This document shows positions 3,027-45,641 of a stretch of DNA of 64,000 nucleotides, piece after piece. A model generated the notes under the pieces. That model saw nothing but the letters and a program-made list of their open reading frames with translations. It did not search any database and was not told the DNA's origin. Position numbers and translations under genes: made by a program. This DNA is from Rhodosorus marinus CCMP1338. Taxonomy: Eukaryota > Plantae > Rhodophyta. Position 1 is the first letter of the stretch; the number at the start of each line of letters is the position of its first letter. The stretch is taken from the NCBI GenBank assembly GCA_029953675.1, contig JAMWBK010000011.1, positions 434,001-498,000 on the forward strand. The letters run 5' to 3'.

Positions 3027-3737
3027 TGTTAGAAGTCATTTCCACCACATCGCTCTTCCCTCATCAGAAGAGCCTCTTTCGTCAACTCCCAACCCCACCA
3101 CCTCCAATTGAACACTACTTATACAAAACCAGTCCAGACTCCCTCCCAGTCCTCTTCTCACCCACCCACTACCCGACCGAAAAACACTCCGATTAAAAAA
3201 TTTTTTTTTTGTCACGAGTTCTCATCACGAGAACAAAAACCAACGCTCTCTCTCTCGCCACGAATCATTGCCTACCAACCGCCTCCAATAAAACCAACGC
3301 TCTAAATTCAGATTTGCCACCTTGTCCTTCCTTGCCGCTTCAAAACATTGTCCAACAACACAATTTGCTGGCCTCTCAACCAACTGAACTGATCACAACA
3401 AGCACCCAGCACCACCTAAACACGAAGAATTTCATGTCCATTTCAAATTTAGGGTTGTCACTTTCCGTCCGATAAACATAAAACGTCAGATATGTCTGCT
3501 AAAATATCGGAGGTCCGAACCAGTAAACTACTTACAAATTAGGGAGTTTGGCTTCTGGCTCGCACCGCATGCAAGTTTATCGGACTTGAATTAAAACGTA
3601 TTCGATCGGGTCGGATGACGGGATTGCCGTCCAATATTCATCAAACGAGGATGAATATTGATCCTAATCTTAGTCTTCGGTGACACTGAGCGCCTGGTTC
3701 AAAGCAATCTAATGTAATATTAGTCCCATCTGATTCC

Positions 3738-16145: not shown

Positions 16146-17539
16146 TTTAGGTAGAAGCGTGAGCGGTTGAGTTTTTAGTTTTCGGTTTCGAGTACAGAGT
16201 GACTTTGGGTTTTTACTTTGCGTATCTTCAATTTGAGTCCACTTGTTGTTTGGAGATCCTTTTTGGATTGAAGAAAACACGCGCTCTCCCCACGTGGATT
16301 TTAGGTTGTTGCTACTATATTTGAACGGTGCGTCGTTGATGTCCTAGGAGTTGGAATGCCCCCCACCTCGGAGCATGTTTTTAGTTTTGGAATTTTGTCA
16401 TTTGCCAGATCGGTTTTAATTGGGAGACTGAGTCCCCAAATGTGGTACGAAGCACCCCCGGACCGCAAAAATGGAAAAACAATTGATTACTCTTGCCACC
16501 GACTCCCTGACTCGGAGACTAACAACCTTTACTTTTACGAGGAATCTGCCTTCCCAATTGGAGGCTCGTAATTCAAACTTTACTGGTTGCATTTCCAATA
16601 TTATTAGCTCCTGAGAGCGTTTCCCGGAGTAGTTGCGAACGGCTGTTTGCAGCTATTCACAACTCTTTCCAGCAGGCTCGGCTGTTTGCTGTAATTCGAA
16701 GTCTAAAACCTGTGGATTTTGGGTGGAAATAGTGAGCTATCAGACACCCACCACAATATCAAATGGAAATTATTTTTGCAACGCCTGATTGTTGTTTGGC
16801 TATGCATGTGAATCTCACAAGGGGGGTCGATTGGGGTGCATCAAACGTCAGTAAGGATGTGTTTGAGCGACTTTGATATGGGGGCCTTGGTGGAGGTATG
16901 CTCAGAGTAGTTCCAAGTTCTCTTCCGCATGTAACGTGCGACTCCCAGGCCCAATGAAGGATCCGTTCCCAATCACCCGAAGCTTCGACCAATTGCGATT
17001 CCGAAGACGCTGCGGGAGCTGACGGCGCTAGCACTCGCCAAGCGAGTGCTAGCGAGTTCGCGCGAGAACGTGCGCGAGATTTGTTCGTGCCAGTACAATT
17101 GGGCATCCAAGTTCCTTCGATGATGGTTTATTCAGAGCCTAACTACCCTGAGAAGCGAGAAAATTAACCCCAGGTTAACGAAACCCCAGGCTATTGTCTT
17201 AAACAAGACGCTCATGACGCACGTGCACCAATAAAGCAAGCGTTGGAGCACCAGAGGATCAAGGACAGCTAATTGAGGAGGCTATCAAGGCGCCCTGGGT
17301 TCTTCCGAAAGAGCACACCAAGCTAACGAGAACCTACACTATCAACTAAACTAAAGCACTCGATGACGAGTGAAGCAAACTGGTAGGTAGGACAATGCCG
17401 AATCGCGAAGCGTAGAGTCTAACATTGCCGCAGCATACTGGGATTCCTTCCGTTGATGAGTTCCTTTGCGTGTGAGCAGATTGTGCGCACTATCCGAGCG
17501 TCCCTGAGCATCTGCGAAATCGCTCTTCTTTCCCTGGAT

Positions 17540-18427
17540 ATCCTTTCTTGGGACTTGCACCGTGCTGCATATGGCCGACTCCTCGCGCAGATGGTCTCAT
17601 CTTCTCGCGCTCGCGCCCGCCTACGTAGTCTTGGAGGGGTTCTTAGCTCTCAGTGGCTCATGACCGTACCAGCCTTTCCGCCACTCACACTGTCGGATTT
17701 CGAAGTGCGTACTTCACTGCGCTTATACCTCGGCTTACAGCAGCCCCCTTGGCCGTACGAGATGGGTTCGTCGTGCCCTCTCTGCTCTCAGACTGAAGAC
17801 AACGCAGATTTTGGCGCCCACCTGCTCGCTAGTTGCCCGGCGGTGAAAGGTGCTCGAACCCGCCGCCACACACGGATCTTGAACCTGTTATACCGGGAAC
17901 TTCGGCCTATAGTCCGGCAAGCCGGTCTGGAAATCGAACGTGAGAAACCTTTACCCGTCGCGGACTTTCAAAATGATGAACGCCGTGTAGCCGACCTGGT
18001 GATCACCTGTGACGACAGCCGCCGTACCACATACGTTGATCTTGCTGTTCCTAACCCTCAAGCTAGTCGTTATCTCCCGGCTGCGGGGGAGCGCCGTGGA
18101 TCTGCCGCCGCCAGCATGAGACGCCGCAAAGAGATCAAATACGCGGGGGCTTTGTCTTCCCCTGGTGTTCGTGCTTCGGCACTAGCACATCGCTTGGTAC
18201 CCCTGATCATTGAGTGCTTTGGGTTCATGGACTATGTTGGTTCTCGCTGGCTTCGGGAGTTGTTCCGCGAACGCCCTGACCGTCTTCAATCGTTGTTTAC
18301 CCGCTTAAGTTTCGTGCTGTGGCGCATGAATGCCGCTTTGATGTTGGAGGCGCGAGTACTTCGCCGCGCTTAGTCTTTTTTTCCCCTCGGGGTTTTTTTT
18401 TTCAGCCTCCGATTAAACCATTCGTTC
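17540..18427 (+). mobile_element. Family A RLE non-LTR retrotransposon, 5'-truncated, intact C-terminal ORF
   Basis: CCHC CPLCSQTEDNADFGAHLLASC, RTRRHTRIL, endonuclease RRVADLVI...YVDLAVPNP...KEIKY. 3' UTR is T7-cccctcgggg-T9-cagcctccgattaaaccattcgttc. TSD ggat; empty site at ~6815. Confidence 0.93.
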
Positions 18428-21273: not shown

Positions 21274-23305
21274 AGTGAAACTGGTAACCAACTGTGCTCG
21301 CTTGTTCTAGAAATGTCGCGCGAGTTTAAACTGCTGATATAGTTATCCTCATAAAATACAAAGATTCTTAGCAATACCTATCGCGCGAACACTGGACTAG
21401 AGTTGGTGACACGGTTGAAGTGGAAGAGGAACTCTCGCGATCAGCTTCGGCTAGTACCGCCCGGCTTTCAATTGCAGATCTTCTAGTCTCGGACGTCGCC
21501 GCTCGACGCGTAGTATTTGGATCTTGCCGTCACTTGCCCGACATCCCCCTTTATTCAGAGCGCTATCTTCAACTTGCCCCATGTGAAATACCTCTCTTCC
21601 ATCTGGCGCCTATAGTCTTCTTTCCCCCCTGCCCACTCGCGAAGTATGGGGTGCTGCCTCACCTCTCAATGACTTACCACCGTTCCAAATTGTTGGAGGG
21701 TTTTGGGCTGCTTCCCAAGTTTCTTGGCTTTTTGGGGGACTGACGCGGGTGTTTTATCAGTGTTTCCTGGGGTCGCTCTTCGAACACGAGTTTTGGTCAG
21801 TTTTCAATTGTGGTTTTTATTTGGTTGCGTGTTCTCACTAGTGATGCAGTAGACGGAGCTCTCGGCTCCCTCAGGGTCGGACAGGAATTAGGGATTTGAC
21901 CTCTGCGGCGGCTCAGTGCCTTCCGCTGATTTTGCTGGGCACTGGTTGGCACCTTGTCCGCAGGTCCTAGGAGCCCGGACGCCATACGCGGCTCTACCGC
22001 TTGCTGTTCCGCTATCTTCGTTCTCAGGTGCTAGTGGGCACGGACCGAGATGTGGAGTATGAGGTCCCCCTGCCGGTGGCAACGGCAATTGCTGAAGCGG
22101 TTGACGCCCCAGTAGTGCAACGGGTGGCGGACCTTGTGGTCACTGATCTGACTGCTCGCGGGAGTGAGTACATCGACCTTTCTACAACTTGTCCCCAGGT
22201 TACCAGATACTTTTCAGCGTCTGCTCGACGCCGAGGCGCTGCAACTCGGTCAATGCGGCAACTGAGGGAATCTAAGTACGCTTCGCCTATGTTAGACTCT
22301 ACGATTCGGCATTGTCCTACAGGTTGTTCCACTTACCATCGAGTGCTTTGGTTTAGTTGATAGTGTGTGTTCTCGTTGGCTCTTTCGGAGGATGAAGGGA
22401 ACAAACCGGTATGATAATGCTGAGTCGCGAAACGTAGACTGCAACATCGCCTCAGCTTGTTGCGATTTTTCCAATTGCCCCATTGACCGAGCTGCAGCTC
22501 AACAGTACCAACCGGATACAGGGAGGTACCAGGTCGCCTAAGTACAACTGGTAGAAATTTCAATATACTCACCTCGATGAGCCCTCAGATCAGTTCGCGC
22601 AAGCTTCCCTTTCTTCAGGTTTATTCAGAGCCTAACCTATCTGAGAAGCGAGAGACCAGACGCTGATGACGCGGGTCTACAAACAAAGAAGCATTTGAGG
22701 GCTACAGGGTCACAGAAAGCTCCGTTAGCAGACCATCTAGACGCCCTGGGTCGTTGCGAAAGATACCTCGCAGCCAGCGAGAACCTTGACTATCTATTAA
22801 GCTAAAGCATTCAATAATGACGGGGACAAACCGGTATGTAACGGCCGAATCGCAAAAAGTAGGGTTTGACACCGCTGCCGCGTGCTGTGATTCTTGCACA
22901 TGCCGCATGGACCGAGCTGCAGCTCCTCGACGCCGAGCGGACGCTGGCAGGTACCTGGTCGCCTGAGGACAAGGGATGGATAGGTTCCCTGTCCTGTTTA
23001 ATATTCCCCAAAAGGATTGGATGATAACTGACGGTTTGTGGGAACTCAAAATAATGATAATTCAATACACGAGATGACAGCTTGTCATTCGGAAACATTA
23101 TCATGATTCAATATTCTCATCGAAGATGATTGATTATTAGACTAACGTTGATTGAGAAATATCAGAGAATTTTATTGAACTCACAATCAGACTGTGTTTT
23201 GGATATTTTCAACACCACACCACACGAATTTTCTAATTTTGTTTATAGTCTATCTAAGACAAAATGAATGAATGGTTTAAGACAAAATAACGGACGTGTC
23301 ATATA

Positions 23306-24809
23306 CGAACGAATGGTTTAATCGGAGGCTGAAAAAAAAACCCCGAGGGGAAAAAAATACTAAGCGCGGCGAAGTACTCGCGCCTCCAACATCAAAGCGG
23401 CATTCATGCGCCACAGCACGAAACTTAAGCGGGTAAACAACGATTGAAGACGGTCAGGGCGTTCGCGGAACAACTCCCGAAGCCAGCGAGAACCAACAGA
23501 GTCCATGAACCCAAAGCACTCAATGATCAGGGGTACCAAGCGATGTGCTAGTGCCGAAGCACGAACACCAGGGGAAGACAAAGCCCCCGCGTATTTGATC
23601 TCTTTGCGGCGTCTCATGCTGGCGGCGGCAGATCCACGGCGCTCCCCCGCAGCCGGGAGATAACGACTAGCTTGAGGGTTAGGAACAGCAAGATCAACGT
23701 ATGTGGTACGGCGGCTGTCGTCACAGGTGATCACCAGGTCGGCTACACGGCGTTCATCATTTTGAAAGTCCGCGACGGGTAAAGGTTTCTCACGTTCGAT
23801 TTCCAGACCGGCTTGCCGGACTATAGGCCGAAGTTCCCGGTATAACAGGTTCAAGATCCGTGTGTGGCGGCGGGTTCGAGCACCTTTCACCGCCGAGCAA
23901 CTAGCGAGCAGGTGGGCGCCAAAATCTGCGTTGTCTTCAGTCTGAGAGCAGAGAGGGCACGACGAACCCATCTCGTACGGCCAAGGGGGCTGATGTAAGC
24001 CGAGGTATAAGCGCAGTGAAGTACGCACTTCGAAATCCGACAGTGTGAGTGGCGGAAAGGCTGGTACGGTCATGAGCCACTGAGAGCTAAGAACCCCTCC
24101 AAGACTAAGTAGGCGGGCGCGAGCGCGAGAAGATGAGACCATCTGCGCGAGGAGTCGGCCATATGCAGCACGGTGCAAGTCCCAAGAAAGGATATTTTGC
24201 AGCGCATCCGTGCGTGCTTGAGCTCGGCTCCCAGCGCGCTGGGAATCATCAGGAGGATCAACTGGAACTTCTTCTTCTGCGGCAACCACTGGGTCAATCT
24301 CCCCTAGAACAGGTTCAGGCGCAGGACGAATCCCCGGGGCGGAGTCTCGAGAGCGGTCAAATACAGCTCGCCAGTCAGGAAGACGGGGTTGAACGGTTTC
24401 GGGGAGACTAGTACAGGAATTCAGGGCGGTTTGGAGCTCCAGAAACAAGTCTTGGGCGCTTTCCGGTACCGTGGGAAGCAAGACACCCCGCGAGAGGCTC
24501 GCCATCAAATTGCGGAACTTCGAGATACCCAAGCTGCTCAAAGTGGGAAGTGCGGTTCCCCAGGCCCCTACTGCGGCTGCAGGTTGGACCACAACACGAT
24601 TGCAGAGGCCCAGTCCCCCCAATCGCAATGGGAGGCCTACCTGGGCGCGCACGACATCACAGGTGGGTCGCGGCAGAGCGCTCAGCTCTTCATCGAGAAA
24701 ATACCCTAGGTCACGGAAACTTTCAGCATCCGCACGAGTGGCCAACCACCGGCCCCAATGAGTTGGAAGTGAGCGAAGCCAATAGGTTAACCGCTGACTG
24801 CAACAATAC
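23306..24809 (-). mobile_element. Family A RLE element, 1.5 kb, 5'-truncated, 6-bp TSD
   Basis: The 461-aa ORF (24745-23360) covers the thumb/linker (QVGLPLRLGGLGL), CCHC and RLE. TSD catata at 23300-23305 and 24810-24815; empty site at ~12060. Confidence 0.93.
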
Positions 24810-25514
24810 CATATAACTGCTATCAGACAGTTTATGACAACAATATCATTTGCCTTCTCAACAGGCTACGTACGCTAAAAAAGGAAAACGTGAGTTTATA
24901 TGGAGAACTTTTCCAGATTCGCCAAAGTCCCGCATTGTTCGGACTTTCGATCATGACACTGAATTACGCTAATACTTAACCATTCGTTCGTAATACTGAG
25001 ACGATATCTGACGCATTGACAGGTTTTATTGATAACTCCTGGGTCTGCATCTCATCGTGTTTGGACGAAGGTAACTATTTAGAAGTTCTCTGGACAGTCC
25101 AAGCGGGAACTGTTGGTGGAGATTGGGAGCGCATGGGAGACAGACTTTTGATATGGGTTTACCAAAACAGTACGGACATAAGCATTCTATAGGGCTTTTC
25201 GTCGGTTCTAACACCCCATCGGTGCGAGAGGCATGTACAGCGCAAAAGATCGAAACGTTCGTTGCCGCTGGCCAAACTCCGTCAACGCCTTCTCCTTTGC
25301 CGGTTGTGTTAATAATCAAGCTTTAGGTGGAAGCGTGAAAGGTTGAGTTTTTAGTTTTCGGTTTCGAGTCCGGGAGAAACTTTGCCTTTTTACTTTACGT
25401 TTCTTCGATTTGCGTCCTGTTTGGAGATCATTTTTGGTTTGAAGAACACACGCTCTCCCCACATGGATTTTAGGTTGTTTTCACTATATTGGAATGGTGC
25501 GTCGTTGATGTCCT

Positions 25515-26640
25515 GTAGGCTTTCCCTTTGGGTACAACAGGGTGATCCCTTGTCCCCTTTCCTACATGCCTGTGGACTACAACTCGTCTTGCTTTGTCTT
25601 CGCTCCGAATTCCCGCAGGTTCGTACGGTTGCATACCACGACGACGTGTGCCTCCTGGGGCCTCCCGATACTCTAGCGCTCGCTTATGATCGTCTCCGCT
25701 CCTTGGCTTCGCGGGTTGACTTGGAGGTTGATCATCACAAATCGTTCTACTGGGGAGGTGTACCTGCACAAGAGCAGCGTCGTTCCAGGATATTTGGAGA
25801 CCGGATGGTTTTGTCCACTTAGGCATCCCCTACGGGTCGCCGTCCTTCGTTGAAGGCGAGTTGCTGCAGCTCCTCGGTAAGCACAGACAGCTGGTTGCAG
25901 AGCTTCGACGGCTACCTCCGGGCTCTCTCCAGTGCTCGTTGTTGCTGTTTCGGTATTGTTGCAGTCAGCGGTTAACCTATTGGCTCCGCTCACTTCCAAC
26001 TCATTGGGGCCGGTGGTTGGCCACTCGTGCGGATGCTGAAAGTTTCCGTGACCTTGGGTATTTTCTCGATGAGGAGCTGAGCGCTCTGTCGCGACCCACC
26101 TGTGATGTGAACTTCGGCCTATAGTCCGGCAAGCCGGTCTGGAAATCGAACGTCAAAAACCTTTACCCGTCGCGGACTTTCAAAATGATGAACGCCGTGT
26201 AGCCGACCGGGTGATCACCTGTGACGACAGCCGCCGTACCACATACGTTGATCTTGCTGTTCCTAACCCTCAAGCTAGTCGTTATCCCCCGGCTGCGGGG
26301 GAGCGCCGTGGATCTGCCGCCGCCAGCATGAGACGCCGCAAAGAGATCAAATACGCGGGGGCTTTGTCTTCCCCTGGTGTTCGTGCTTCGGCACTAGCAC
26401 ATCGCTTGGTACCCCTGATCATTGAGTGCTTTGGGCTCATGGACTCTGTTGGTTCTCGCTGGCTTCGGGAGTTGTTCCGCGAACGCCCTGACCGTCTTCA
26501 ATCGTTGTTTACCCGCTTAAGTTTCCTGCTGTGGCGCATGAATGCCGCTTTGATGTTGGAGGCGCGAGTACTTCGCCGCGCTTAGTCTTTTTTTCCCCTC
26601 GGGGTTTTTTTTTTTCAGCCTCCGATTAAACCATTCGTTC
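25515..26640 (+). mobile_element. Family A element with reverse transcriptase motifs, internally deleted and frameshifted
   Basis: Encodes VQQGDPLSPFLHACGLQ...VAYHDDVCLLGP. An internal deletion at ~26108 joins the thumb region to the RLE region. The A-type 3' tail is present. Confidence 0.9.
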
Positions 26641-26692
26641 GGTTAAAAATAAGTCTGAGCAACGTTTACCGCACCTGCATTTGGAAATACTG

Positions 26693-27965: not shown

Positions 27966-29271
27966 CGAAGTCCAATAGTCAATCATTTCATTTATGGATC
28001 AGCCTTTGTATCAATAACTATTTCTTGGTATTCTCATACCAAGAATTAATGACATGAGAAAGAGGCGAGAACCTCTTTCTCATGTCATGACTTCTAATGA
28101 ATGAATTATGTCTCGGCTTGCGAAAAAAAGACTATCACGTAACGAATCATGACTACTAGTGAAATGATAGTCTGCCGTACCGTTGTTTGTGGGGCAAGGA
28201 CTGGGAGTAGAACAATCGCATTCCTAAAGGAAGTTTAAGATACCGGACGGCAATCGGTCGTTATCGGAGCATTTAGCGGACGTAACCTCTACGTTTATTT
28301 TCTATTCAGGTTCGAAAAACTTAAATTGGAAGGGAGTCCTCGGCAAACGCCCTTCAGTATTTCCAAATGCAGGTGCGGTAAACGTTGCTCAGACTTATTT
28401 TTAACCTATGCAATCGGACGTTCTTTTTTCGGACGGAGATGACAACGCTATGCAGGCTTAAAACACCGTAATCCTCATCCGGAACTAAGAGTTCGTTTGG
28501 AAAGCAAGTACAAGTCTTGGCCGCGCGTCCGCGACATTAGACGGACAGAAATTTAGCATTTCTCCCTTGTTTCTAGTCCCCCTTCACGCAGTGAGTAGCG
28601 TTTCAGGCTAGCTAGTAAGTCGATCCAGTATAAGTATACACAATCTATTTTTGAATCGCGCTAGAAAGTTTGAGCGCGTGTGTAAAAGAGAGACTCCGAA
28701 TGCGGACTGTCACTGAAACTCTCTAATAAGCGCTGACAGTTAGTGCGGCACGAGCGTGGGGGTGGCAGTTACGAACTAGTTCACCGGGTTCGGTTGTGTG
28801 AAGCACTGCGAAATGAACTTATTTTGCTTTCCAATTGTCACAGACTCCCCTTCAGAAAGCCGATGGTTACCGTCAGCAGCGTCAGGCAGCGTGGAGGTGG
28901 CAGTCGCTCCGGTCATTGCTCTGGGCGGAACGAGGTACATTTCTCCGCCAAGGAATACCGGAATTTCCAGGCCTCACGTACTCGATCAGCCTCCGATTAA
29001 ACCATTCGTTCGATCTCGCAGGAATGTTTGTTCACAGGCTTTGCGCGAATACCTGGTCCGTGATATTTCGCTGCGGTAGGTAGCTGCCGAATAAAGGCTA
29101 CGGGGTTATAAGTAAAGCGACGCAAGCTAGGTGTTGGGATATGGGAGAAGTCCTGCATTGGTAGAAGCGGGAAATCTGATGAGCGCTGAGAACTAAATTT
29201 GCAGAGGAGCGAAAGAGTTTGCAGACCGTCTGTAGAAGTTGTCTATTTGGTGTAGAAAGATTGGATTGAAC

Positions 29272-30351
29272 ATGATGAGGTTGAGTGCTTTAATTCTGGT
29301 CACCCTATTAGGGTTCACAGTGGCGGTTCCATTGATGCAGAAAGTTCATCTTGCTAAGAACGTACAGGCAGATGTTCAATCTCGGGCACTCCTAGCAGCC
29401 GGGGTTGAGGTTGAGAAGGCCGGGCCAGGGGTTGAGGTTGAGTCGGCCGAAGCTCGCCGTGGGGTTGAGGTTGAGGCGGCAGAAGCTCGCCGTGGGGTTG
29501 AAGACCCTGTAGCCCGCACTTTTTTTCTAGATGAGGCGCTTGGAAGCCTGGTTGAGGTTGAGGAGGCTGGAGCCCTGGTTGAGGCTGTTGACGTTGGAGC
29601 AGGCGTTGAGGTTGAGAACCACGTAACCCGCACTTTTTTTATAGGTGAGGATGCTGGAGCCGGGGTTGAGGTTGAGGATGCTGGAGCAGGCGTTGAGGTT
29701 GAGAACGTAGCCCGCACTTTTTTTCTAGATGAGGCGCTTGGAAGCCTGGTTGAGGTTGAGGAGGCTGGAGCCCTGGTTGAGGCTGTTGACGTTGGAGCAG
29801 GCGTTGAGGTTGAGAACCACGTAACCCGCACTTTTTTTATAGGTGAGGATGCTGGAGCCGGGGTTGAGGTTGAGGATGCTGGAGCAGGCGTTGAGGTTGA
29901 GAACGTAGCCCGCACTTTTTTTCTAGATGAGGCGCTTGGAAGCCTGGTTGAGGTTGAGGAGGCTGGAGCCCTGGTTGAGGCTGTTGACGTTGGAGCAGGC
30001 GTTGAGGTTGAGAACCACGTAACCCGCACTTTTTTATAGCTGAGGATGCTGGAGCCGGGGTTGACTTTGAGGATGCTGGAGCAGGCGTTGAGGTTGAGAA
30101 CGTAGCCCGCACTTTTTTTCTAGATGAGGAGGCTGGAACCGGGGTTGAGGCTGATACGGCCGAAGCTCGCCTTGGGTTTGAAGAGCCCGTAGCCCGCGTT
30201 CAAGTTGAGGAGGAAGGAGGCGGGGTTGAGGTAGAGGAGGCTGGAGCAGGAAGGCGTTCAGGTTGAGGAGCCCGGATCCAGCCCTGAGGTTCCCGTACAA
30301 TTCGTTGGAATTTCGGAAACAAGAGATCAAACTATCAACAAATTCAACTAG
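29272..30351 (+). CDS. Secreted Glu/Val-rich repeat protein, copy 4, with a novel 66-aa (198-bp) repeat; stop at 30039
   Basis: Same signal peptide. Repeat units start at 29512, 29710, 29908 and 30105. A T6 (instead of T7) run at ~30030 creates TAG. The tail VPVQFVGISETRDQTINKFN* is out of frame. Confidence 0.75.
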
Positions 30352-30680: not shown

Positions 30681-32739
30681 CATGGCTGAATTCTGGTGCC
30701 AATGGTCTCCATTCAACTCGGAGTTACATTCCCCGTGTCTGCTCACCATGCGAAGTATGGGGTGCTGCTTCGCCTCTCAATGACTCCCCCACCGTTCCAA
30801 ATTATTGGAGGGTTTTGGTTTTGCCGCTTTTTGGGGAACCAGCGCGGGTGCTTTCCGTGTCTCCTGGGATCGCGCTTCGAATCCGAGCGTTGGTCAGTTT
30901 TCAATCGTGGTTTCTACCTGGATACGTGTTCTCACCTGCGATGCAGCAGACGGAGCCCTTGGCCCCATCAAGAGCGGAAAGGGGTTCCAGAGTTAACCTG
31001 CGCGGCGGCAGAGTGCCTTCCGGTGGGCCCTTGTTGGCATCTTGTCCGCAGGTCCTAGCCGCCCGGACTCGACGCTACCTGCCAGCGTCTGTCTGCTCGA
31101 CGTCAAGGCGCTGCAGCTCGGTCAATGCTGCAACTGAAGGAATCCCAGTACGCTGCGGCTATGTTGGACTCTTCACTTCGCGATTCGGCATTGTCCAATC
31201 GGTTTGTTCCACACATCATAGAGTGCTTTTCTTTGGTTTTTTGATAGTGTAGGTTCCCGTTGGCTTCGTCGGCTCTTTCGAAACAACCCAGGTCGTCTTG
31301 ATAGCCTGCTCACGGAGCTGTCCTTGACCCTCTAGCGTTCCAACGCTGCTTTATTGTTGGACGCCCCCGGAACCTCGTCAACAGATCCGTTTATTCAGAG
31401 CGTCATCAGCGTCTTGTTTCTCCCTTCTCCGGGTATTTAGGATCTGAATAAATGGACGATGCAGTAGGGCCTAACAGCATCGCGTCGGCGTCTCTTGTGG
31501 TACGAAAGTAGCTCCGTTTTTGTCGGCTGTGACTAGCTTGGTTGAGACCAAGCTAGCTGAGGCTGCTTGGGAGGAAGGAGCTCTCTCGCAGCTCGTCGAG
31601 AGCCTGGGAGCGCCGGTGTCCAGTCTCACGAGGAGCCCCAGTTTGATCTTGTAGAGCGTGTCCCCCCCCCCCCCCGCGGGCGACGACCGAAAGGGGGGTC
31701 AGTCAACGCGCGTGAGTCAGTCAAAACTCCCTTATCCCGGCACAGCAACGGTTGGCGGTTCCGGCGCGGGGCAGTGTGAGAGTCCCTAGTGGCCCCGGGG
31801 GCCCTGGCCGGGTCTCAGCTCTCGGAGGCTGACGGTGATCACGATGGAGGACAGGCAGGGCGATGTACGGACTCCACCAGTTAGGAGCGGTGGTGGAGAG
31901 GACGGAGGGACCCCACCTTGGGGCAAAATTCTCCAGGTACGCCATCACATGAGCCGGCGGTGCTCCTGCGAAGCAATGCCAAGAAAGCTGGTCAGTCTCA
32001 TCAGGTTTACTCAGAGCCCAACTACCCTGAGAATAGAGAGACAAGACGCTGATGACGCGCGTCTACAAACAAAATCTACAACCAAAGCAGCAGTTGAGCG
32101 CGACAGGGTCAAAGAATGCTCCGTGAGCAGACTATCTAGACGCCCTGGGTCGTTGCGAAAGATACCTCGCAGCCGGCAAGAACCTACACTATCTATGAAG
32201 CCAAAGTATTCAATAATGAGGAGGATAAACCGTATGTCACCACCGAATTGCGAAAGGTAGGGTTTGACATCGCTGCCGCGTACTGGGATTCTTTAACATG
32301 CCGCATGGACCGAGCTGCAGCGCCAGTCGCCTGAGGACAAGGGATGGAGAGGTCAACGTACTAACGGCGACGCGCATTTAGGTCAAACACAACGAGATCC
32401 GGCACCCGCTGTATCGCTGGGGCGTCACTCTCGTCAGCAATCTCCCTTGCTACCGCCAGAGGGACCTCATACTCCACTTCTCGGTCCGTACCGAGCGATT
32501 CAGAACAAAGGTAGCGGAAAAGCAACCGGTTGAGCCGCGTATGGGGTTTGGCCCGAGCCCCTTGAACCTCCGCACAAGACGCCACAAGTGCGCACCATAA
32601 TCACCCCAAGGCACATTGGCCCCGTACAATGCACATCGAGAATCCCGCTCAACAGGCCAAGCGGGTTGCGGCAGCCCCAGGTACAATCGCAAGCTTACAC
32701 GCACACCCACAAACTAGCGTTTAGATAGTCTGCTCACGG

Positions 32740-33842
32740 ATACTTACCTGGCCGGGCCGATCGCTCCTCACGTAAGAGCATCTGCTTGGATGAGAGTGAG
32801 TATGCTCACTCTCATCCAAGTGACGTGCTATGGCACGTCACTTTATCTTTTCGGGCATCTGTGGCAGTCTCGCTTGACTCCTACGAAGTAACCTCTGTGT
32901 GACTGTCGACGGCTTAATTTCTGACATGGGGAGATTGATGATCTGTTTATTCAGAGGCTAACTACCCTGAGAAGCGAGAGACAAGACGCTGATGACGCGC
33001 GTCCACAAACAAAGCAGAATTGGAGCGCCACAGGGTCAAAGAAAGCTCCGTGAGCAGACTATCTAAACGCCCTGGGTCGTCGCGAAACAGAGCTCGCAGT
33101 CAGCCAGAATCTACACTATCTATCAAGCCAAAGCGCTTAATGATGAGGGGAACGAACCGGTATGTCACCGCCGAATCGCGAAAGGTAGGGTTTGACATCG
33201 CTGCCGCGTACTGCGAATCTTTCACTTGCCGCATGGACCGAGCTGCAGCTCCTCGGCGCCGAGCCGACGCAGGCAGCTACCTGGTCGCCTGAGGACAAGG
33301 GATGGAGAGGTCAATGTACTCACTGCGACGCGCATTGAGGTCAGTCACAACGAGATCCGCCACCCGCTGTACCGCTGGGGCGTCACTCTCATCAGCAATT
33401 TCCGATGCCACCGCCAGAGGGACCTGATACTCCACTTCTCGGTCCGTACCGAGCGATTGAGAACGAAGGTAGCGGAAAAGCAAGCGGTTGAGCCGCGTAT
33501 GGCGTCTGGTCCGGGCCCCTTGAACCTCCGCACAAGACGCCAACAGATGCGCACCATAATCACCCCACGGCATATTGGCCCCCACAATGCGCATCTAGAA
33601 TCCCGCTCAACAGGCCAAAGGAGTTGCGGCAAGCTCAGGTAGAGTCGTAAGCTTACACGAAGTTCGAGATCGATAAGCGCCAACCGCGGATACGAAGGTA
33701 TGGCCGTAAAGAAACGGGAGCTGAGACTCCCCCAAAAACCCCGCAGGCGAGCGAAAGTCGACGCCGAGCACGAAGGTAAACTCAGAAGGGTGGCATGCGA
33801 GTCCCGATGTATTGGGAGATTCGCGTTCGCGCGACCTCCCCT
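32740..33842 (+). ncRNA. U1: U1 snRNA copy, probably a retroposed pseudogene, split into 32740-32936 and 33814-33842 by a retroelement
   Basis: 5' end ATACTTACCTGG. Helix H GCCG (32751-54) pairs with CGGC (32910-13). SL1 loop CTCACGTAA. Sm site AATTTCTG (32916-23). SL4 GGGGAGATTCGCG-TTCG-CGCGACCTCCCC is recovered after removing the insert. Confidence 0.9.
32937..33813 (-). mobile_element. Family B element (877 bp) inserted in U1 SL4
   Basis: 8-bp TSD gggagatt at 32929-32936 and 33814-33821. Tail gatgatctgtttattcagaggc. Confidence 0.92.
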
Positions 33843-33845
33843 AAC

Positions 33846-34749
33846 TCCCAAAAAAAAACATTTCGTGGGACATACATCGGGACTCCGGTGCCACCCTTCT
33901 GAGTTTACCTTCGTGCTCGGCGTCGACTTTCGCTCGCCTGCGGGGTTTGGGGGGGAGTCTCAGCTCCCGTTTCTTCACGGCCATACCTTCGTATCCGCGG
34001 TTGGCGCTTATCGATCTCGAACTTCGTGTAAGCTTACGACTCTACCTGAGCTTGCCGCAACCCCTTTGGCTTGTTGAGCGGGATTCTAGATGCGCATTGT
34101 GCGGGGCCAATGTGCCGTGGGGTGATTATGGTGCGCATCTGTTGGCGTCTTGTGTGGAGGTTCAAGGGGCCCGGACCAGACGCCATACGCGGCTCAACCG
34201 CTGCTTTTCCGCTATCTTCGTTCTCAATCGCTCGGTACGGACCGAGAAGTGGAGTATCAGGTCCCTCTGGCGATGGCATCGGAAATTGCTGATGAGAGTG
34301 ACGCCCCAGCGGTACAGCGGGTGGCGGATCTCGTTGTGACTGACCTCAATGCGCGTCGCAGTGAGTACATTGACCTCTCCATCCCTTGTCCTCAGGCGAC
34401 CAGGTAGCTGCCTGCGTCGGCTCGGCGTCGAGGAGCTGCAGCTCGGTCCATGCGGCAAGTGAAAGATTCGCAGTACGCGGCAGCGATGTCAAACCCTACC
34501 TTTCGCGATTCGGCGGTGACATACCGGTTCGTTCCCCTCATCATTAAGCGCTTTGGCTTGATAGATGGAGTAGGTTCTGGCTGACTGCGAGCTCTGTTTC
34601 GCGACGACCCAGGGCGTTTAGATAGTCTGCTCACGGAGCTTTCTTTGACCCTGTGGCGCTCCAATTATGCTTTGTATGTGGACGCGCGTCATCAGCGTCT
34701 TGTCTCTCGCTTCTCAGGGTAGTTAGCCTCTGAATAAATGATCATCATC
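33846..34749 (+). mobile_element. Family B 3' portion fused directly downstream of U1
   Basis: CCHC and RLE coding remnants, then ctgaataaatg(atc)3 tail. Confidence 0.9.
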
Positions 34750-35522
34750 GAGCTTTCTTTGACCCTGTGGTGCTCCAATTCTGCTTTGTTTGTGGACGCG
34801 CGTCATCCGCGTATTGTCTCTCGATTCTCAGGGTAGTTAGCCCCTGAATAAACGGGAAGTTCGAGGTCGGGAGGCGCCAATACGCAAGTATGACCGTCAA
34901 GAAGCGGGGGCTGAGACTCCCTCCCAAACCGCGCATGCGAGCCAAAACCGACGCCGAGGGGGAATGTGATGAACTCAGAAGGGCGGCCTACGAGTCCCAA
35001 TGTATGTCCCACGAAAGCGTTTTTCGGATTAAACGGATTCATGGTAGCTGCCGCAAAAAATAGGTCAGCCTCTGACACGCACGGAACCGGAAGATGAGCG
35101 GAGCGGTCTGGAGGTACCCTTCTGGGAGACTGCACAGCTCAGTCAGGAGCCCTTCGTGGTGAGTCAGTAGCGCGGAGAGGGTGCGTTCGACAAATATCGG
35201 GGTGCCCACGGGGAAGGACCCCGAACAGAATGAAGCTCCCAGACCGCCAAATGTCTCGAAACCTGGATGGAACCGCGTCCGCAGTGCAGGGAGACCCCCC
35301 CCAAAAAAAAATCGTACTTGGTATGGTTTATACGCACCCCACCAAGGAAACGACCTCGCCAAGAAAATCATTTGCCGGCACCAGATCGTCAGGGATGCCA
35401 AGGAGCGTCACATCGTCATGGAAGGCGACTACACGGACCCGCGGGAACTGATGTTTCAGCCGCTACAGCGCCAGTTGCAACTCACAGGCGCACGCAGAGG
35501 TACGGCCATAAGGGATCGCCCT

Positions 35523-36494
35523 GTTCCAGTTGATCCTCCTGATGATTCCCAGCGCGCTGGGAGCCGAGCTCAAGCACGCACGGATGCGCTGCAAAATATC
35601 TTTTCTTGGGACTTGCACCGTGCTGCATATGGCCGACTCCTCGCGCAGATGGTCTCATCTTCTCGCGCTCGCGCCCGCCTACTTAGTCTTGGAGGGGTTC
35701 TTAGCTCTCAGTGGCTCATGACCGTACCAGCCTTTCCGCCACTCACACTGTCGGATTTCGAAGTGCGTACTTCACTGCGCTTATACCTCGGCTTACATCA
35801 GCCCCCTTGGCCGTACGAGATGGGTTCGTCGTGCCCTCTCTGCTCTCAGACTGAAGACAACGCAGATTTTGGCGCCCACCTGCTCGCTAGTTGCTCGGCG
35901 GTGAAAGGTGCTCGAACCCGCCGCCACACACGGATCTTGAACCTGTTATACCGGGAACTTCGGCCTATAGTCCGGCAAGCCGGTCTGGAAATCGAACGTG
36001 AGAAACCTTTACCCGTCGCGGACTTTCAAAATGATGAACGCCGTGTAGCCGACCTGGTGATCACCTGTGACGACAGCCGCCGTACCACATACGTTGATCT
36101 TGCTGTTCCTAACCCTCAAGCTAGTCGTTCGTTACCTCCCGGCTGCGGGGGAGCGCCGTGGATCTGCCGCCACCAGCATGAGACGCCGCAAAGAGATCAA
36201 ATACGCGGGGGCTTTGTCTTCCCCTGGTGTTCGTGCTTCGGCATTAGCACATCGCTTGGTACCCCTGATCATTGAGTGCTTTGGGTTCATGGACTCTGTT
36301 GGTTCTCGCTGGCTTCGGGAGTTGTTCCGCGAACGCCCTGACCGTCTTCAATCGTTGTTTACCCGCTTAAGTTTCCTGCTGTGGCGCATGAATGCCGCTT
36401 TGATGTTGGAGGCGCGAGTACTTCGCCGCGCTTAGTCTTTTTTTCCCCTCGGGGTTTTTTTTTTCAGCCTCCGATTAAACCATTCGTTCGTTCG
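35523..36494 (+). mobile_element. Family A element, 5'-truncated, with a 4-bp frameshift at ~36127
   Basis: Near-identical to 17540-18427 and to the reverse complement of 23306-24290. Tail ttcgttcgttcg. Confidence 0.92.
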
Positions 36495-39400
36495 CTCCAT
36501 ACCCGTACGAGCCGCAAAGCTGTCGCTCTCGCCATACGGGTGACAAATCGGGGGCCGTTTGGCGCTTCACCATATACGCGACGTAAGAACTAGAAGCCTG
36601 CCGGGAGGAGCTAACGAACTAAGCGCGTGTGCTCGCGACACACTGTCCAAAAAACCCTTTCGTGGGACATACATCGGGACTCGTATGCCACCCTTCTGAG
36701 TTTACCTTCGTGCTCGGCGTCGACTTTGGCTCGCCTGCGCGGTTTGGGGGGGAGTCTCAGCTCCCGTTTCTTCACGGTCATGCCTTTAGATCCGTTTATT
36801 CAGAGGCTAACTACCCTGAGAAGCGAAAGACAAGACGTTGATGACGCGCGTCCACATACAAAGGAGAATTGGAGCGCCACAGGGTCAAAGAAAGCTCCGT
36901 GAGCAGACTATCTAAACGCCCTGGGTCGTTGCGAAACAGAGCTCGCAGCCAGCCAGAACCTACACTATCTATCAAGCCAAAGCACTCAATAATGAGGGGG
37001 ACGAACCGGTATGTCACCGCCGAATCGCGAAAGGTAGGGTTTGACATCGCTGCCGCGTACTGCGAATCTTTCACTTGCCGCATGGACCGAGCTGCAGCTT
37101 CTCGACGCCGAGCCGACGCAGGCAGCTACCTGGTCGCCTGAGGACAAGGGATGGAGAGGTCAATGTACTCACTGCGACGCGCATTGAGGTCAGTCACAAC
37201 GAGATCCGCCACCCGCTGTACCGTTGGGGCGTCACTCTCATCAGCAATTTCCGATGCAATCGCCAGAGGGACCTCATACTCCACTTCTCGGTCCGAACCG
37301 AGCGATTGCGAACGAAGATAGCGGAAAAACAAGCGGTTGAGCCGCGTATGGCGTCTGGTCCGGGCCCCTTGAACCTCCGCACAAGACGCCAACAGATGCG
37401 CACCATAATCACCCCACGGCACATTGGCCCCGCACAATGCGCATCTAGAATTCCGCTCAACAGGCCAACGGGGTTGCGGCAAGCCCAGGTAAAGTCGTAA
37501 GCTTACACGAAGGTCGAGATCGGTAAGCGCCAACCGCGGATACACAGGTATTACCGTGAAGAAACGGGAGTTGAGACTCCCTCCAAACCGCGCAGGCGAG
37601 CCCAAGTCGACGCCGAGCACGAAGGTAAACGGAACGGAGGTCCAGAACTGGAGGCCGCTGTTCAACAATGTACCGCCCTGCTGATCCGTTTACGCAGAGG
37701 CCAACTACCCTGAAAAGCGATAGACAAGACACTGATGACGCGCATCTACAAACAAAGCAGAATTGGAGCGAGCGCCACAGGGTCAAAGAAAGCTCCGTGA
37801 GCAGACTATCTAAACGCCCTGGGTCGTTGCGAAACAGAGCTCGCAGCGCTGCCGAGTGGTACCCAGGCTCTGTGCGATTCCTGCGCCTGGGCTGCAGTTC
37901 TTGACTCACTCGGTGGCCAGCGTTCGGGAGTCTCTGCTGCAGCACCGTGTGTTGGAAATGGTGTAGAAACTGCCCAGGATATTGACGCCGTGGCTGTGCC
38001 GTCGAGACCGCCAGAGGAGGGCGTTTCCCCGTCGGGTGCGGCCCCTTCGAGGACCGATGTAATCCAAAAGCCCCTTTCGTGGGACATACATCGGGACTCG
38101 TATGCCACCCTTCTGAGTTTACCTTCGTGCTCGGCGTCGATTTTGGCTCGCCAGCGCGGTTTGGGACCGTGAAGAAACTCCCGTTTCTTCACGGTCATAC
38201 CTCTTCGATCCGTTTATTCAGAGGCTAACTACCCTGAGACGCGAGAGACAAGACGATGATGACGCGCGTCCACAAACAACGCAGAATTGGAGCGCCACAG
38301 GGTCACAGAAAGCTCAAATCCGTTTATTCAGAGGCTAACTACCCTGAGAAGCGAGAGACAAGACGCTGATGACGCACGTCCACATACAAAGCAGAATTGG
38401 AGCGCCACAAGGTCAAAGAAAGCTCCGTGAGCAGACTATCTAAACGCCCTGGGTCGTTGCGAAACAGAGCTCGCAGTCAGCCAGAACCTACTCTATCTAT
38501 CAAGCCAAAGCACTTAATGAGGAGGGGGACGAATCGGTATGTCACCGCCGAATCGCGAAAGGTAGGGTTTGACATCGCTGCCGCGTACTGCGAATCTTTC
38601 ACTTGCCGCATGGACCGAGCTGCAGCTTCTCGACGCCGAGCCGACGCAGGCAGCTACCTGGTCGCCTGAGGACAAGGGATGGAGAGGTCAATGTACTCAC
38701 TACGACGCGCATTGAGGTCAGTCACAACGAGATCCGCCACCCGCTGTACCGCTGGGGCGTCACTCTCATCAGCAATTTCCGATGCCACCGCCAGAGGGAC
38801 CTCATACTCCACTTCTCGGTCCGTACCGAGCGATTGAGAACGAAGGTAGCGGAAAAGCAAGCGGTTGAGCCGCGTATGGCGTCTGGTCCGGGCCCCTTGA
38901 ACCTCCGCACAAGACGCCAACAGATGCGCACCATAATCACCCCACGGCACATTGGCCCCGCACAATGCGCATCCAATTCTGCTTTGTTTGTGGACGCGCG
39001 TCATCAGCATCTTGTCTCTCGCTTCTCAGGGTAGTTAGCCTCTGAATAAACGGATCATCTAGAATCCCGCTCAACAGGCCAAGGGGGTTGCGGCAAGCCC
39101 AGGTAAAGTCGTAAGCTTACACGAAGTTCGAGATCGGCAAGCGCCAACCGCGGATACGCAGGTATGACCGTGAAGAAACGGAAGGTTAGACTCAACCCTA
39201 AACGGCGCAGGCGATGCCAAAGTCGACGCCGAGCACGAAGGTAAAGAGAAGAGGGGTTCTTTCACGGAAGGGTTACGTTAGTCCAGTCTGGGTATGCACA
39301 CGCTAACTACCCTGAGAAGCGAGAGACAAGACGCCGATGACGCGCGTCCACAAACAAAGCAGAATTGGAGCGCCACAGGGTCAAAGAAAGCTCCGTGAGC

Positions 39401-41021
39401 AGACTATCTAAACGCCCTGGCTCGTTGCGAAACACTGCTCGCAGCCAGCGAGAACCTACACTATCTATCAAGCCAAAGCACTCAATAATGATGGGGACGA
39501 ACCGGTATGTCACCGCCGAATCGCGAAAGGTAGGGTTTGACATCGCTGCCGCGTACTGCGAATCTTTCACTTGCCGCATGGACCGAGCTGGAGCTCCTCG
39601 ACGCCGAGCCGACGCGGGCAACAGGGCGATCCCTTAGGGCCGTTCCTGCACGCTGTGGATTGCAACTGGTGCTGTTGCGGCTGAAACATCAGTTCCCGCG
39701 GGTCCGTGCGGTCGCCTTCCATGACGATGTGACGCTTCTTGGCACTCCCGACGATCTGGTGGCGGCCTACGATTTTCTCGGCGAGGTGGCTTCCTTGGTG
39801 GGGCTGCGTATCAACCATGCCAAGTACGCTTTCTGGGGGGGGTCTCACTGCACCGCGGACGCGGTTCCATCCAGGTTCCGAGATATTTGGCGAGCTGAGG
39901 GCTTCCTTCTGTTCGGTGTCCCCGTAGGCACCCCGATATTTGTTGACCGCAGCCTCTCCGCGCTCCTGAGTCATCATGATGAGCTCCTGACTGAGCTGTG
40001 CAGTCTCCCAGAAGGGTACCTCTAGACCGCTCTGCTCATCTTCCGGTTCAGCGGCTGACCTATTTTTTGCGGCAGCTACCCTTCGAGTGAGGGTCTTGGC
40101 TGGCGCTCCGCGCAGACCGACGAGCGAGGGACGTGCTAGGCACGCTGATGGATGCTTTTCAGGGTAGTTAGCCTTTGAATAAACGGATCGGATGGATGCT
40201 GAGCTATCTGTTTTGGGGGATTCAGAAAAGGAGGTCCTTCACCGGCAGATCGCGTTGCCCGTGCGGTTGGGTGGGCTGGCTGTGGGATCTTACGCGGCGA
40301 TCCAGCCGGCGGCTGCGGTGAGTTCGTGGGCCAATGCGCTTAATACATGGTCTACGGGGTGTGATCCGCATGTGAGTGGTTTTTTGAGTGGGCTTCGGGT
40401 TGGGCGGCTGGACGGGACTCTCGCCCCACGGCTCTGGGTTTTTTTTTCGGAACTGGAGGCCGCTTTTCAACAATGTACCGCCCTGCCGAGTGGTACCCAG
40501 GCTCGTTGCGATTCCCGGGCGGCAATTCTTGACTCACTCGGTGGCCAGCGTTCGGAAGTCTCTGCTGCAGCACCGTGTGTTGGAAATGGTGCACAAACTG
40601 CCGAGGATATTAACGCCGTGCCTGTGCCGTCGAGACCGCCAGAGGAGGGCGTTTCCCCGTCGGGTGCGGCCCCTTCGAGGACCGATGTAATCCAAAAAAC
40701 CCTTTCGTGGGACATACATCGGGACTCGTATGCCATCCTTCTGAGTTTACCTTCGTGCTCGGCGTCGATTTTGGCTCGCCTGCGCGGTTTTCGGGGAGTC
40801 TCAGCTCCCGTTTCTTCACGGTAATACCTGCGTATCCGCGGTTGGCCCTTATCGATCTCGAACTTCGTGTAAGCTTACGACTTTACCTGGGCTTGCCGCA
40901 ACCCCCTTGGCCTGTTGAGCGGGATTCTAGATGCGCATTGTGGGGGCCAATGTGCCGTGGGGTGATTATGGTGCGCATCTGTTGGCGTCTTGTGCGGAGG
41001 TTCAAGGGGCCCCGACCAGAC

Positions 41022-41407
41022 AAGGACTAGTTGGTCTCCAAATGGAGGCAGTTTACGTCTTCGAAACCAAGGAGTTCCATTTCACACTCACCGTTGAGGA
41101 GTCAAAGTTCTTCGCTGCAGCTCTAAAGGAGATCGACAATACGCTGACGTGGGTCATCTCAGAAGTTGACAACCTCGGGGCCGATCTGGGTACAGTTATT
41201 GGAACCGCCATTGCCGGGCTGGAGGACGCCGGTTCATTCATCGAGAACGCCATTGACACGAGCGCTAGTGCGATTGAAGCGGCAGAAGCCACCCTTGCGA
41301 AAGACATTTCAAACGCGATTGACGATGCCGTCGATACTACGGTGAACGCCGTCGTTTCGGGTTCAAAGACCGTGTACAAAAGCCTGAAAAATTTCAACGG
41401 TTGGTAG
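41022..41407 (+). pseudogene. 3' remnant (386 bp) of a paralog of the 43514-45253 gene
   Basis: Colinear with 44868-45253 apart from about 4 substitutions. It abuts a family B fragment at 41021. Confidence 0.9.
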
Positions 41408-45253: not shown

Positions 45254-45641
45254 ACACCCGCTCCCAGTCGAACTAGGACGGTCTAAAACACACTATCAGT
45301 AGAATAAAGTCGCTAACTCCATGCGCGTACACAAAGACTCCTAAGTTCACTCCTTCGGTCTTCTGTCGTCACACTCAACTACCCTGACTACCTGTCTGCG
45401 GGGGAGTGTATGAAGATCGTTCTAGCCGACAACGGGCGGCCGTGTCGGCTAGTGTCACAGTATCTCCCTCATTGGCACCATCGCCAACACTCAACTATCC
45501 CGGTCGTTTGAGACCGACCTCTTGGACCTTTTGCTCTGGGTACTAAGCATATCTTGAGCTTCAGTTCAACTAGTTGTTAAGCCCGTAGTATGTCTACTAG
45601 TTGTACGAAGCGGGGACTTGTCCTGAGCCTTGAAGTTGTGG

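Follow-up and report, generated by a model that had tools for sequence, protein, structure and literature searches.

A probable fold-back repair scar in a U1 retrocopy of the red alga Rhodosorus marinus, and related scars beside retroposon 3' ends

Introduction

Polymerase theta extends stem-loops and thereby creates inverted templated insertions of 3-30 bp (PMC11292364), and snap-back synthesis is described in excerpts of work on synthesis-dependent microhomology-mediated end joining (SD-MMEJ) (PMC5728401, PMC2943611, PMC4912351). Perfect hairpins in RNA and microRNA genes can also be created by short template-switch mutations (PMC8794818; in excerpted form, PMC5453318 and PMC10710096). Here we analyse a double palindrome within stem-loop 2 of a U1 small nuclear RNA (snRNA) sequence of the red alga Rhodosorus marinus CCMP1338, the nuclear genome of which contains 24,821 introns and abundant nuclear copies of mitochondrial DNA (PMC10250338). 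It lies in a stretch of 64,000 nucleotides of contig JAMWBK010000011.1 of the assembly GCA_029953675.1 (positions 434,001 to 498,000), which is hereafter called the window and to which all coordinates refer. With a probability of roughly 0.6, we interpret the palindrome as a DNA-level fold-back scar that resulted from a break and is tied to the machinery of a local retroelement, and not as an evolved feature of the RNA.

Similar to the products of polymerase theta and SD-MMEJ, the inserted sequence is the reverse complement of the adjacent flank, its size is within the range of 3-30 bp, and a 3' end made by fold-back is joined via a short microhomology, here AAG. In contrast to these products, the scar folds back at both ends and is bracketed by a 4-nt duplication, no prior terminal pairing is visible, and scars of this kind cluster beside the 3' ends of one retroposon. 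With template-switch mutations it shares the appearance of a perfect stem in an RNA gene in one event. The dominance of 4-nt loops, an inverted loop at a further locus (28022) and the polarisation of three local analogues by related copies are also in line with that class of mutation. However, the U1 scar and the one at 28022 each consist of two inverted copies facing each other, which goes beyond a single four-point switch.

Chimeric retrocopies of snRNAs and long interspersed nuclear elements (LINEs), such as those of the U6/L1 type, are explained by a jump of the reverse transcriptase from the element RNA to the snRNA. As in these chimeras, a full-length snRNA starting at +1 is fused here in the same orientation to a retroelement inside a target. 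The differences are that the partner would be a full-length non-autonomous element of a LINE with a restriction-like endonuclease (RLE) in a red alga, and that the insertion is a four-piece chain without a target-site duplication at its outer junctions. Reverse transcriptases of the R2 type are also known to jump templates. Like R2, the candidate LINE in the window has putative reverse-transcriptase and CCHC/PD-(D/E)XK-like motifs as well as 3'-anchored, 5'-truncated copies, while R2 itself is strictly site-specific and nicks 2 bp apart, unlike the varied targets, the one 8-bp target-site duplication and the scars 20-105 bp downstream that are seen here. Integration by R2-type RLE LINEs is covered in excerpts of PMC4838377 and PMC3636483, and an RLE of this type is described in an excerpt of PMC6895275 as acting like a Holliday-junction resolvase on a four-way branched intermediate. 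As such an endonuclease acts on DNA structure, cruciform-prone DNA near junctions would be a plausible substrate or product. We know of no published R2 product that resembles the double fold-back. Finally, the P-nucleotide palindromes of V(D)J joining and of hAT excision footprints lack a spacer and mostly measure 1-4 nt. The U1 scar resembles them in carrying palindromic copies of the flank ends at a repaired junction and differs from them by arms of 11-16 nt around non-palindromic 4-nt loops.

Structure of the double palindrome

Read directly, the letters at 32785-32843 are CTTGGATGAGAGTGAG-TATG-CTCACTCTCATCCAAG(overlap AAG)TGACGTGC-TATG-GCACGTCACTT. An inverted-repeat search resolved them into two hairpins with 100% complementary arms that stand 4 nt apart: hairpin 1 has arms of 16 nt (32785-32800 and 32805-32820) and hairpin 2 has arms of 11 nt (32818-32828 and 32833-32843). 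All pairs in these arms are Watson-Crick pairs and none is a G-U pair. The AAG at 32818-32820 is common to both hairpins and represents the overlap between the reverse complements (rc) of the left flank, L, and of the right flank, R. The letters and the search thus agree with the first-pass annotation of this DNA, which had described two overlapping perfect hairpins with 16-bp and 11-bp arms and TATG loops. The components of the structure are:

32785..32800, plus strand: left flank L (CTTGGATGAGAGTGAG), presumably the 5' side of stem-loop 2 in the ancestral U1 and now the left arm of hairpin 1
32801..32804, plus strand: first TATG, loop of hairpin 1 and, in the ancestral U1, presumably the first half of the heptad in the loop of stem-loop 2
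32805..32832, plus strand: 28-nt insert, composed of rc(L) at 32805-32820, rc(R) at 32818-32828 and the duplicated TATG at 32829-32832
32833..32843, plus strand: right flank R (GCACGTCACTT), presumably the GCAC half of the loop heptad plus the 3' strand of stem-loop 2 in the ancestral U1 and now the right arm of hairpin 2

The change at this site can be written as L-TATG-R to L-TATG-rc(L)/rc(R)-TATG-R. All 28 nt of the insert are explained by the reverse complements of the 16-nt L and the 11-nt R, which share AAG, plus TATG. The same composition, with the AAG joint, had been proposed before, and its arithmetic holds base by base. The placement of the insert at 32805-32832 is one among several equivalent placements. 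It does not represent one contiguous reverse-complement copy, since rc(L) is followed by rc(R), whereas contiguous copying would give the reverse order. A second copy of the 28-nt sequence was not found within the window. In our view, it is very probable that the insertion was templated by fold-back at the level of DNA.

Identity of the U1 sequence and its state before the insertion

The Rfam model for U1 (RF00003) aligns to 32740-32955 with 57.5 bits (E 3e-13). This is under the gathering score of 69.5 and applies to the sequence as present, including the 28-nt insert and an 877-nt insertion further downstream. At the gathering threshold, Rfam gave no match in the whole window; U1 appeared only in E-value mode, with the 32740 locus as the sole U1 match. 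The loop region of stem-loop 2 comprises 67 nt at this locus compared to 14 nt in the model, so that the alignment puts the surplus where the first-pass annotation had put it, in U1 stem-loop 2. The 5' splice-site recognition sequence AUACUUACCUG is exact at 32740-32751 and occurs a single time in the window, and the Sm site AAUUUCUGA at 32916-32924 is followed by stem-loop 4. Taking out 32937-33821 gives the stem-loop 4 sequence GGGGAGAUUCGCGUUCGCGCGACCUCCCC, which can be aligned with five environmental U1s through GCGUUCGCGC and has a canonical form, with a GGGGAG/CUCCCC stem and a CGCG-UUCG-CGCG tip. The environmental U1s used as a yardstick were collected in a metagenome scan with the 5'-end pattern ATACTTACCTGGCCGGG, which yielded 49 loci, among them ~15 real U1s, none of them close to R. 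marinus.

Removal of the 28 nt leaves CTTGGATGAGAGTGAG-TATG-GCACGTCACTT, which in a local fold forms an 11-13-bp stem and a loop with AUGGCAC; across the restored junction, the U1 before the insertion would have read ...GAGTGAGTATGGCACGTCACTT.... In the restored RNA, the heptad AUGGCAC starts at nt 63 and matches the U1A-site heptad AUUGCAC at 6/7 positions, and four environmental U1s of normal length have (A/C)UUGCAC at nt 64-66. In the present sequence, the GCAC of the heptad is paired inside the stem of hairpin 2. The canonical loop that is obtained upon deletion suggests that the break fell inside a U1A-type loop, between UAUG and GCAC. Folds of the whole restored U1, constrained and unconstrained, failed to give the four-way junction, and only the local fold of stem-loop 2 is used here.

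Between stem-loops 2 and 3, the sequence at 32844-32880 contains ~25-30 nt beyond a canonical U1 (UUUUCGGGCAUCUGUGGCAGUCUCGCUUGACUCC), even with the 28 nt removed. A MIR156-like match at the U1 locus was rejected as it comprises merely the word GAGAGTGAG, and a match to MIR535 was dismissed as word-level chance.

Recurrent fold-back scars in the window

With a minimum arm length of 10 bp and loops of 0-8 nt, eight perfect hairpins are present in the window, compared to a mean of 0.51 and a maximum of 3 in 100 shuffles. Arms of at least 13 bp occur in four hairpins of the window and in none of the shuffles, and the loop measures 4 nt in five of the eight. The hairpins fall at six loci (3632, 17026, 28022, 31533, 32785 and 38165). 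The first-pass annotation had overlooked that scars of the same kind occur at sites other than U1, which are:

28022..28088, plus strand: second double fold-back with a 35-nt insert, four paralogues without the insert; flank-side distance of 50 nt from the retroposon 3' end at 27972
38165..38196, plus strand: single fold-back, ~12-14 nt exchanged for a reverse-complement copy of the 14 nt that follow, loop TCCC; flank-side distance of 8 nt from the retroposon 3' end at 38204
17026..17054, plus strand: single fold-back, a pre-existing 6-bp inverted repeat lengthened to 13 bp, which adds 10 nt net; flank-side distance of 64 nt from the retroposon 3' end at 17118
3632..3660, plus strand: perfect 11-bp hairpin with a 7-nt loop, no paralogue; flank-side distance of 70 nt from the retroposon 3' end at 3730
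31533..31556, plus strand: perfect 10-bp hairpin with a 4-nt loop, no paralogue; flank-side distance of 72 nt from the retroposon 3' end at 31461

The insert at 28022 starts as the reverse complement of the left flank, continues with TTA, for which no origin is assigned, and with the reverse complement of the 17-nt right flank, and ends with C; its right hairpin has 18 bp and the loop GAGA if one C is counted as a misincorporated T. At 38165, the ancestral sequence is kept in six paralogues. At 17026, the paralogue at 6311-6425 does not have the extension, and the return to the original sequence occurred via a GCG microhomology. Comparison with paralogues that show the prior state proves the scars at 28022, 38165 and 17026 to be derived. 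These polarised analogues show that fold-back templated insertion is a recurrent type of mutation in this region, beyond U1.

Some ~42 extra nt are present at 17161-17202 in an old retroposon copy and absent from the paralogue at 6441. They hold the palindrome TTAACC-CC-AGGTTAA and may represent another templated insertion.

Position of the scars relative to retroposon 3' ends

For one retroposon family, 20 3' ends were located; the near edge of every hairpin locus (6/6) is 8-94 nt away from one of them, always on the flank side. The zone that qualifies makes up 0.049 of the repeat-rich region at 3-41 kb, and 0.049^6 equals 1.5e-8; with a zone widened to 150 nt, ~8% of the region, an arithmetic estimate for six loci gives ~2.6e-7. 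At the 38204 locus, an extra 109-nt copy at an existing tail coincides with a scar, and the paralogue at 36786 has neither.

This position at retroposon junctions suggests that the breaks were caused by the endonuclease of an element or by failed integration. The first-pass annotation had attributed the cut at U1 to an aborted RLE cleavage. A candidate RLE-type LINE in the window and the location of 6/6 loci within 94 nt of 3' junctions of its putative partner are in favour of this attribution, as circumstantial support. The link to the retroelement thus appears statistically strong within the window and is circumstantial, and that the machinery of the element caused the scars is a tentative conclusion, to which we would give slightly less than even odds.

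By itself, the U1 scar would be one more templated fold-back insertion in neutral DNA. What gives it weight are the six recurrences in ~40 kb, the before-and-after evidence from paralogues, and the positional tie to the 3' junctions of a retroposon family that is probably driven by an RLE-type LINE. If this link holds genome-wide, it would provide a sequence signature for failed or collateral integration of elements without long terminal repeats (non-LTR elements), which is otherwise invisible, and a natural data set on break repair in a red alga that lacks RAD52.

The U1 sequence as part of a composite insertion

The first-pass annotation had not noticed that the U1 locus is a retrocopy without an expressed version and is split by an insertion of 877 bp. 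The locus and its surroundings comprise:

32740..32936, plus strand: 5' part of the U1 retrocopy, which starts at +1 (AUACUUACCUGG), includes stem-loops 1-3 as well as the Sm site and stops within the 5' arm of stem-loop 4, at GGGGAGATT
32937..33813, minus strand: 5'-truncated retroposon copy of 877 nt (unit 2) inside U1 stem-loop 4, sense on the minus strand, 3' end ...CTGAATAAACAGATCATC
33822..33849, plus strand: rest of U1 stem-loop 4, CGCGTTCGCGCGACCTCCCC at 33822-33841, followed by the 8-nt 3' extension TAACTCCC
32702..32740, plus strand: 5' junction of the composite insertion, ~15-17 nt of filler and then a perfect 24-nt sense fragment of the retroposon at 32717-32740
33850-34749, plus strand: full-length retroposon copy (unit 3), which starts with A9 and has the same orientation as U1
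34750-34856, plus strand: 104-nt 5'-truncated retroposon copy directly after unit 3, in the same orientation as U1
32005..32701, minus strand: older retroposon copy (unit 1), left half; the right half picks up at 34857-35040

Unit 2 is flanked by an 8-bp target-site duplication, GGGAGATT, at 32929-32936 and 33814-33821. This duplication and the completed stem-loop 4 indicate that U1 was once whole, with ~189 nt, and was then split by unit 2; they also rule out that it is a 3'-truncated U1. The left half of unit 1 ends with ...AAGCTTACACG and continues with AAGTTCGAGG... from 34857. Since joining 32701 to 34857 rebuilds an uninterrupted unit 1, the DNA at 32702-34856 (2.15 kb) represents an insertion. 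Its pieces all lie in one orientation and consist of the filler, the 24-nt fragment, U1 with its 8-nt extension, the full-length retroposon with A9 and the 104-nt copy. The filler resembles element positions 32995-33010 at 13/16 nt, and the last A of the 24-nt fragment is at the same time the +1 of U1. The outer junctions of the composite have no target-site duplication: the ACACG before and the AAGTT after the insertion are contiguous in intact copies.

A native upstream promoter region is not present, as ~38 nt of element-derived filler lie between +1 and the break in the older copy. Judged by this arrangement, the U1 in the window is a promoter-less, dead retrocopy (a chimeric retro-pseudogene) and no gene. 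The composite was probably made through serial template jumps of a reverse transcriptase, as is assumed for U6/L1 chimeras. In a dead retrocopy, the scar would have no consequence for splicing. R. marinus retains SNRPA (U1A), SNRNP70 (U1-70K) and SNRPC (U1C) (PMC5880011 Table S3), and the retention of these proteins implies that working U1 genes must exist elsewhere in the genome. The annotation of the locus would accordingly change to a chimeric retro-pseudogene, which would provide evidence for template jumping of a reverse transcriptase onto an snRNA in red algae.

Three minor observations concern the same region. A 234-nt inverted repeat (33579-33812 and 33872-34105) with a 59-nt spacer corresponds to two retroposon copies head to head, and its spacer is made up of what remains of stem-loop 4 and of the right copy's longer 5' end. 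A 24-bp terminal inverted repeat, or a miniature inverted-repeat transposable element, flanking U1 was ruled out because the 24-mer is a sense fragment of the element. A search for a hammerhead ribozyme around CTGATGA gave no Rfam match and no plausible helix II.

The retroposon family and a candidate RLE-type LINE

The retroposon has a length of ~0.9 kb, and ...CTGAATAAAC is the 3' end common to all copies, which appears on the other strand as ...CCTCTGAATAAAC followed by a few variable bases. The ~20 copies measure 36 to ~880 nt from the common 3' end. A common end together with varied lengths is the pattern of 5'-truncated non-LTR copies, and this 3'-anchored truncation favours a retroposon over nuclear copies of mitochondrial minicircle DNA. 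A common breakpoint lies ~110 nt from the 3' end: two independent truncated copies, at 38207-38315 and 34750-34853, start at the same base (GAGCTTTC...), at which the fragment 32717-32740 ends. A shared position of this kind speaks for a discrete stop or an RNA end ~110 nt from the 3' end of the retroposon. At 38204/38314 and at 34747/34861, the insertion point of a short copy coincides with the tail of a copy already in place, which suggests that insertion prefers existing 3' junctions.

A second repeat family is a candidate LINE, represented by four copies that are 98-100% identical and have a common end base and differing lengths. By this identity, the LINE seems to have been active recently. 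Its parts in the window are:

23300..24745, minus strand: 3' part of the LINE with an open reading frame (ORF) of 461 aa, followed by a 60-nt 3' untranslated region ending AGCCTCCGATTAAACCATTCGTTCG
17538-18434, 25382-26642, 35523-36491 and 39537-40192, plus strand: other LINE copies, with ends at 18434, 26642 and 36491
25382..25822, plus strand: putative reverse-transcriptase fragment of the LINE family with the motifs GDPLSP and AYHDDV

The 461-aa ORF runs toward the common end and, inspected by eye, contains the motifs CPLC..H....C (CCHC), RTRRH and ADLV...VDLAV. Its best match in the PDB is an R2 retrotransposon protein, over 35 residues of the CCHC/RHN stretch with a sub-threshold E of 0.021, and upstream LINE fragments match RVT_1 with an E of 4.6e-4, which is below the cut-off. 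A search of a protein database with the LINE ORF returned no homologues. The 3' terminus of the LINE, AGCCTCCGATTAAAC, resembles that of the retroposon, AGCCTCTGAATAAAC, as is the case in pairs of LINEs and short interspersed nuclear elements (SINEs). With moderate confidence, the LINE can be assigned to the RLE type, with the retroposon as its non-autonomous partner.

Mechanism and alternative explanations

The structure of the U1 scar could have arisen from a two-ended break that kept TATG on both ends, either as a 4-nt stagger with 3' overhangs or as a filled-in stagger. Each 3' end would then have folded back with a 4-nt loop and been elongated by copying its own strand, with a gain of 16 nt at one end and 11 nt at the second, before the extended ends were joined at the 3-nt AAG microhomology. 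The breaks or nicks may have come from the integration machinery of the element or from a failed integration beside existing copies, and the polymerase that performed the snap-back synthesis may have been a repair polymerase (polymerase-theta-like) or the reverse transcriptase of the element itself. The duplication of TATG fits 4-nt 3' overhangs and does not prove them. We slightly favour such a two-ended break over replication switching.

A more specific variant would explain the scars as "ghost insertions". The RLE-LINE machinery of R. marinus would nick or cut DNA 20-105 bp downstream of partner copies in target-primed events that are template-less, and both 3'-OH ends of the target, which normally serve as primers for the first and the second strand, would snap back. 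This may lead to a double fold-back with a duplication resembling a target-site duplication, or to a single fold-back if only one strand was nicked, with an extension that was possibly carried out by the reverse transcriptase of the element. We regard this variant as doubtful.

Several observations weigh against a fold-back scar tied to the element machinery. A repeat that could prime snap-back synthesis is not present at U1, as the TATG 3' end cannot pair with the base next to L and the first templated base follows directly after the TATG loop, without a base-paired primer terminus. In vitro, polymerase theta prefers at least 2 terminal base pairs (PMC11292364); the analogue at 17026, unlike the U1 scar, does have a 6-bp primer repeat. 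The left loop at 28022 is inverted (TCTC from the ancestral GAGA), which does not fit a simple geometry of 3' overhangs. Regarding the co-localisation, the distance threshold was set post hoc in a single 64-kb window, four 3' ends of the LINE (Y-type) have no scar nearby, and several scars adjoin old element copies and hence did not all arise simultaneously with those insertions. The assignment of the LINE to the RLE type is of moderate confidence, as it is based on sub-threshold matches and motifs read by eye. Finally, the L-TATG-R state at the U1 locus is inferred from the local fold and from environmental U1s.

Among the alternatives, replication-based short template switching at stalled forks in a repeat-rich region according to the four-point model, which involves neither a double-strand break nor a retroelement enzyme, explains these data best. 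At 38165, a length-preserving swap for one contiguous reverse-complement copy is the classic signature of a template switch. The inverted loop of the left hairpin at 28022 is expected for an inter-strand switch, and template-switch events are enriched in 4-nt loops (PMC8794818). In addition, RAD52, a restraint on microhomology-mediated recombination, is reported to be absent in the algal class of R. marinus (PMC10250338). Against this explanation, the inserts at U1 and 28022 would need at least three switches each, compared to the one symmetric step of a two-ended break. Template switching alone would also leave unexplained why six loci lie within 94 nt of the 3' ends of one element. We consider it unlikely.

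Snap-back hairpins are known products of reverse transcriptases, and the scar might have arisen during reverse transcription of U1 RNA, when the stable stem-loop 2 stalled the enzyme and it snapped back. The apparent origin of the U1 from RNA, its exact +1 start, the 8-nt 3' extension and the chain of junctions resembling template jumps would be in line with such an event. However, the sense-orientation copy of L would have to appear in the complementary DNA strand without a template during first-strand synthesis. Moreover, a double scar is also found at 28022, which is not a U1 sequence, and the single scars arose in DNA that was already integrated. This origin is quite improbable.

Even less probable is that both hairpins were already part of the source U1 gene or RNA and that R. 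marinus expresses an expanded U1. An RNA-derived copy does mirror some expressed U1, and template switching can make lasting RNA hairpins (PMC8794818). The insert, though, sequesters the GCAC of the U1A-type heptad within a perfectly paired stem, and yet SNRPA, SNRNP70 and SNRPC are retained (PMC5880011 Table S3). The perfect Watson-Crick arms without G-U pairs also speak against this possibility, as does the membership of the scar in a local class at element junctions.

The footprint of a cut-and-paste DNA transposon, with a 4-bp TATG duplication, hairpin-mediated excision and P-nucleotide-like additions, is hardly credible. It would account for the doubled TATG and for the palindromic flank copies between both TATGs. 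Palindromes from hairpin opening have no spacer, whereas non-palindromic 4-nt loops are present here; the other scars show no direct duplication, and the 23 ORFs scanned include no DNA transposase.

The long-read artefacts known to us do not produce perfect palindromes of 10-17 bp that are templated from local flanks, and on this general knowledge the scars do not look like artefacts. We give next to no credence to an assembly or polishing artefact, as might be suspected in a repeat-rich region of a long-read assembly (PMC10250338), or to a functional small-RNA hairpin, since the MIR156-like match (E 0.04) reaches 24.5 bits where the gathering score is 62, and is confined to the word named above.

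Other repeats in the window

Long arrays with alternating 27-nt and 33-nt periods and a high GC skew occupy 8590-9800 and 20233-21000; they contain ORFs on both strands, for which no Pfam match was obtained. At 29395-30209, a 198-nt unit is repeated four times in tandem, with two identical copies. The sequence at 41022-41414, which abuts a retroposon copy, is a 393-nt duplicate (98.7% identical) of 44868-45260, and its source is the 3' end of a 579-aa gene at 43514-45253.

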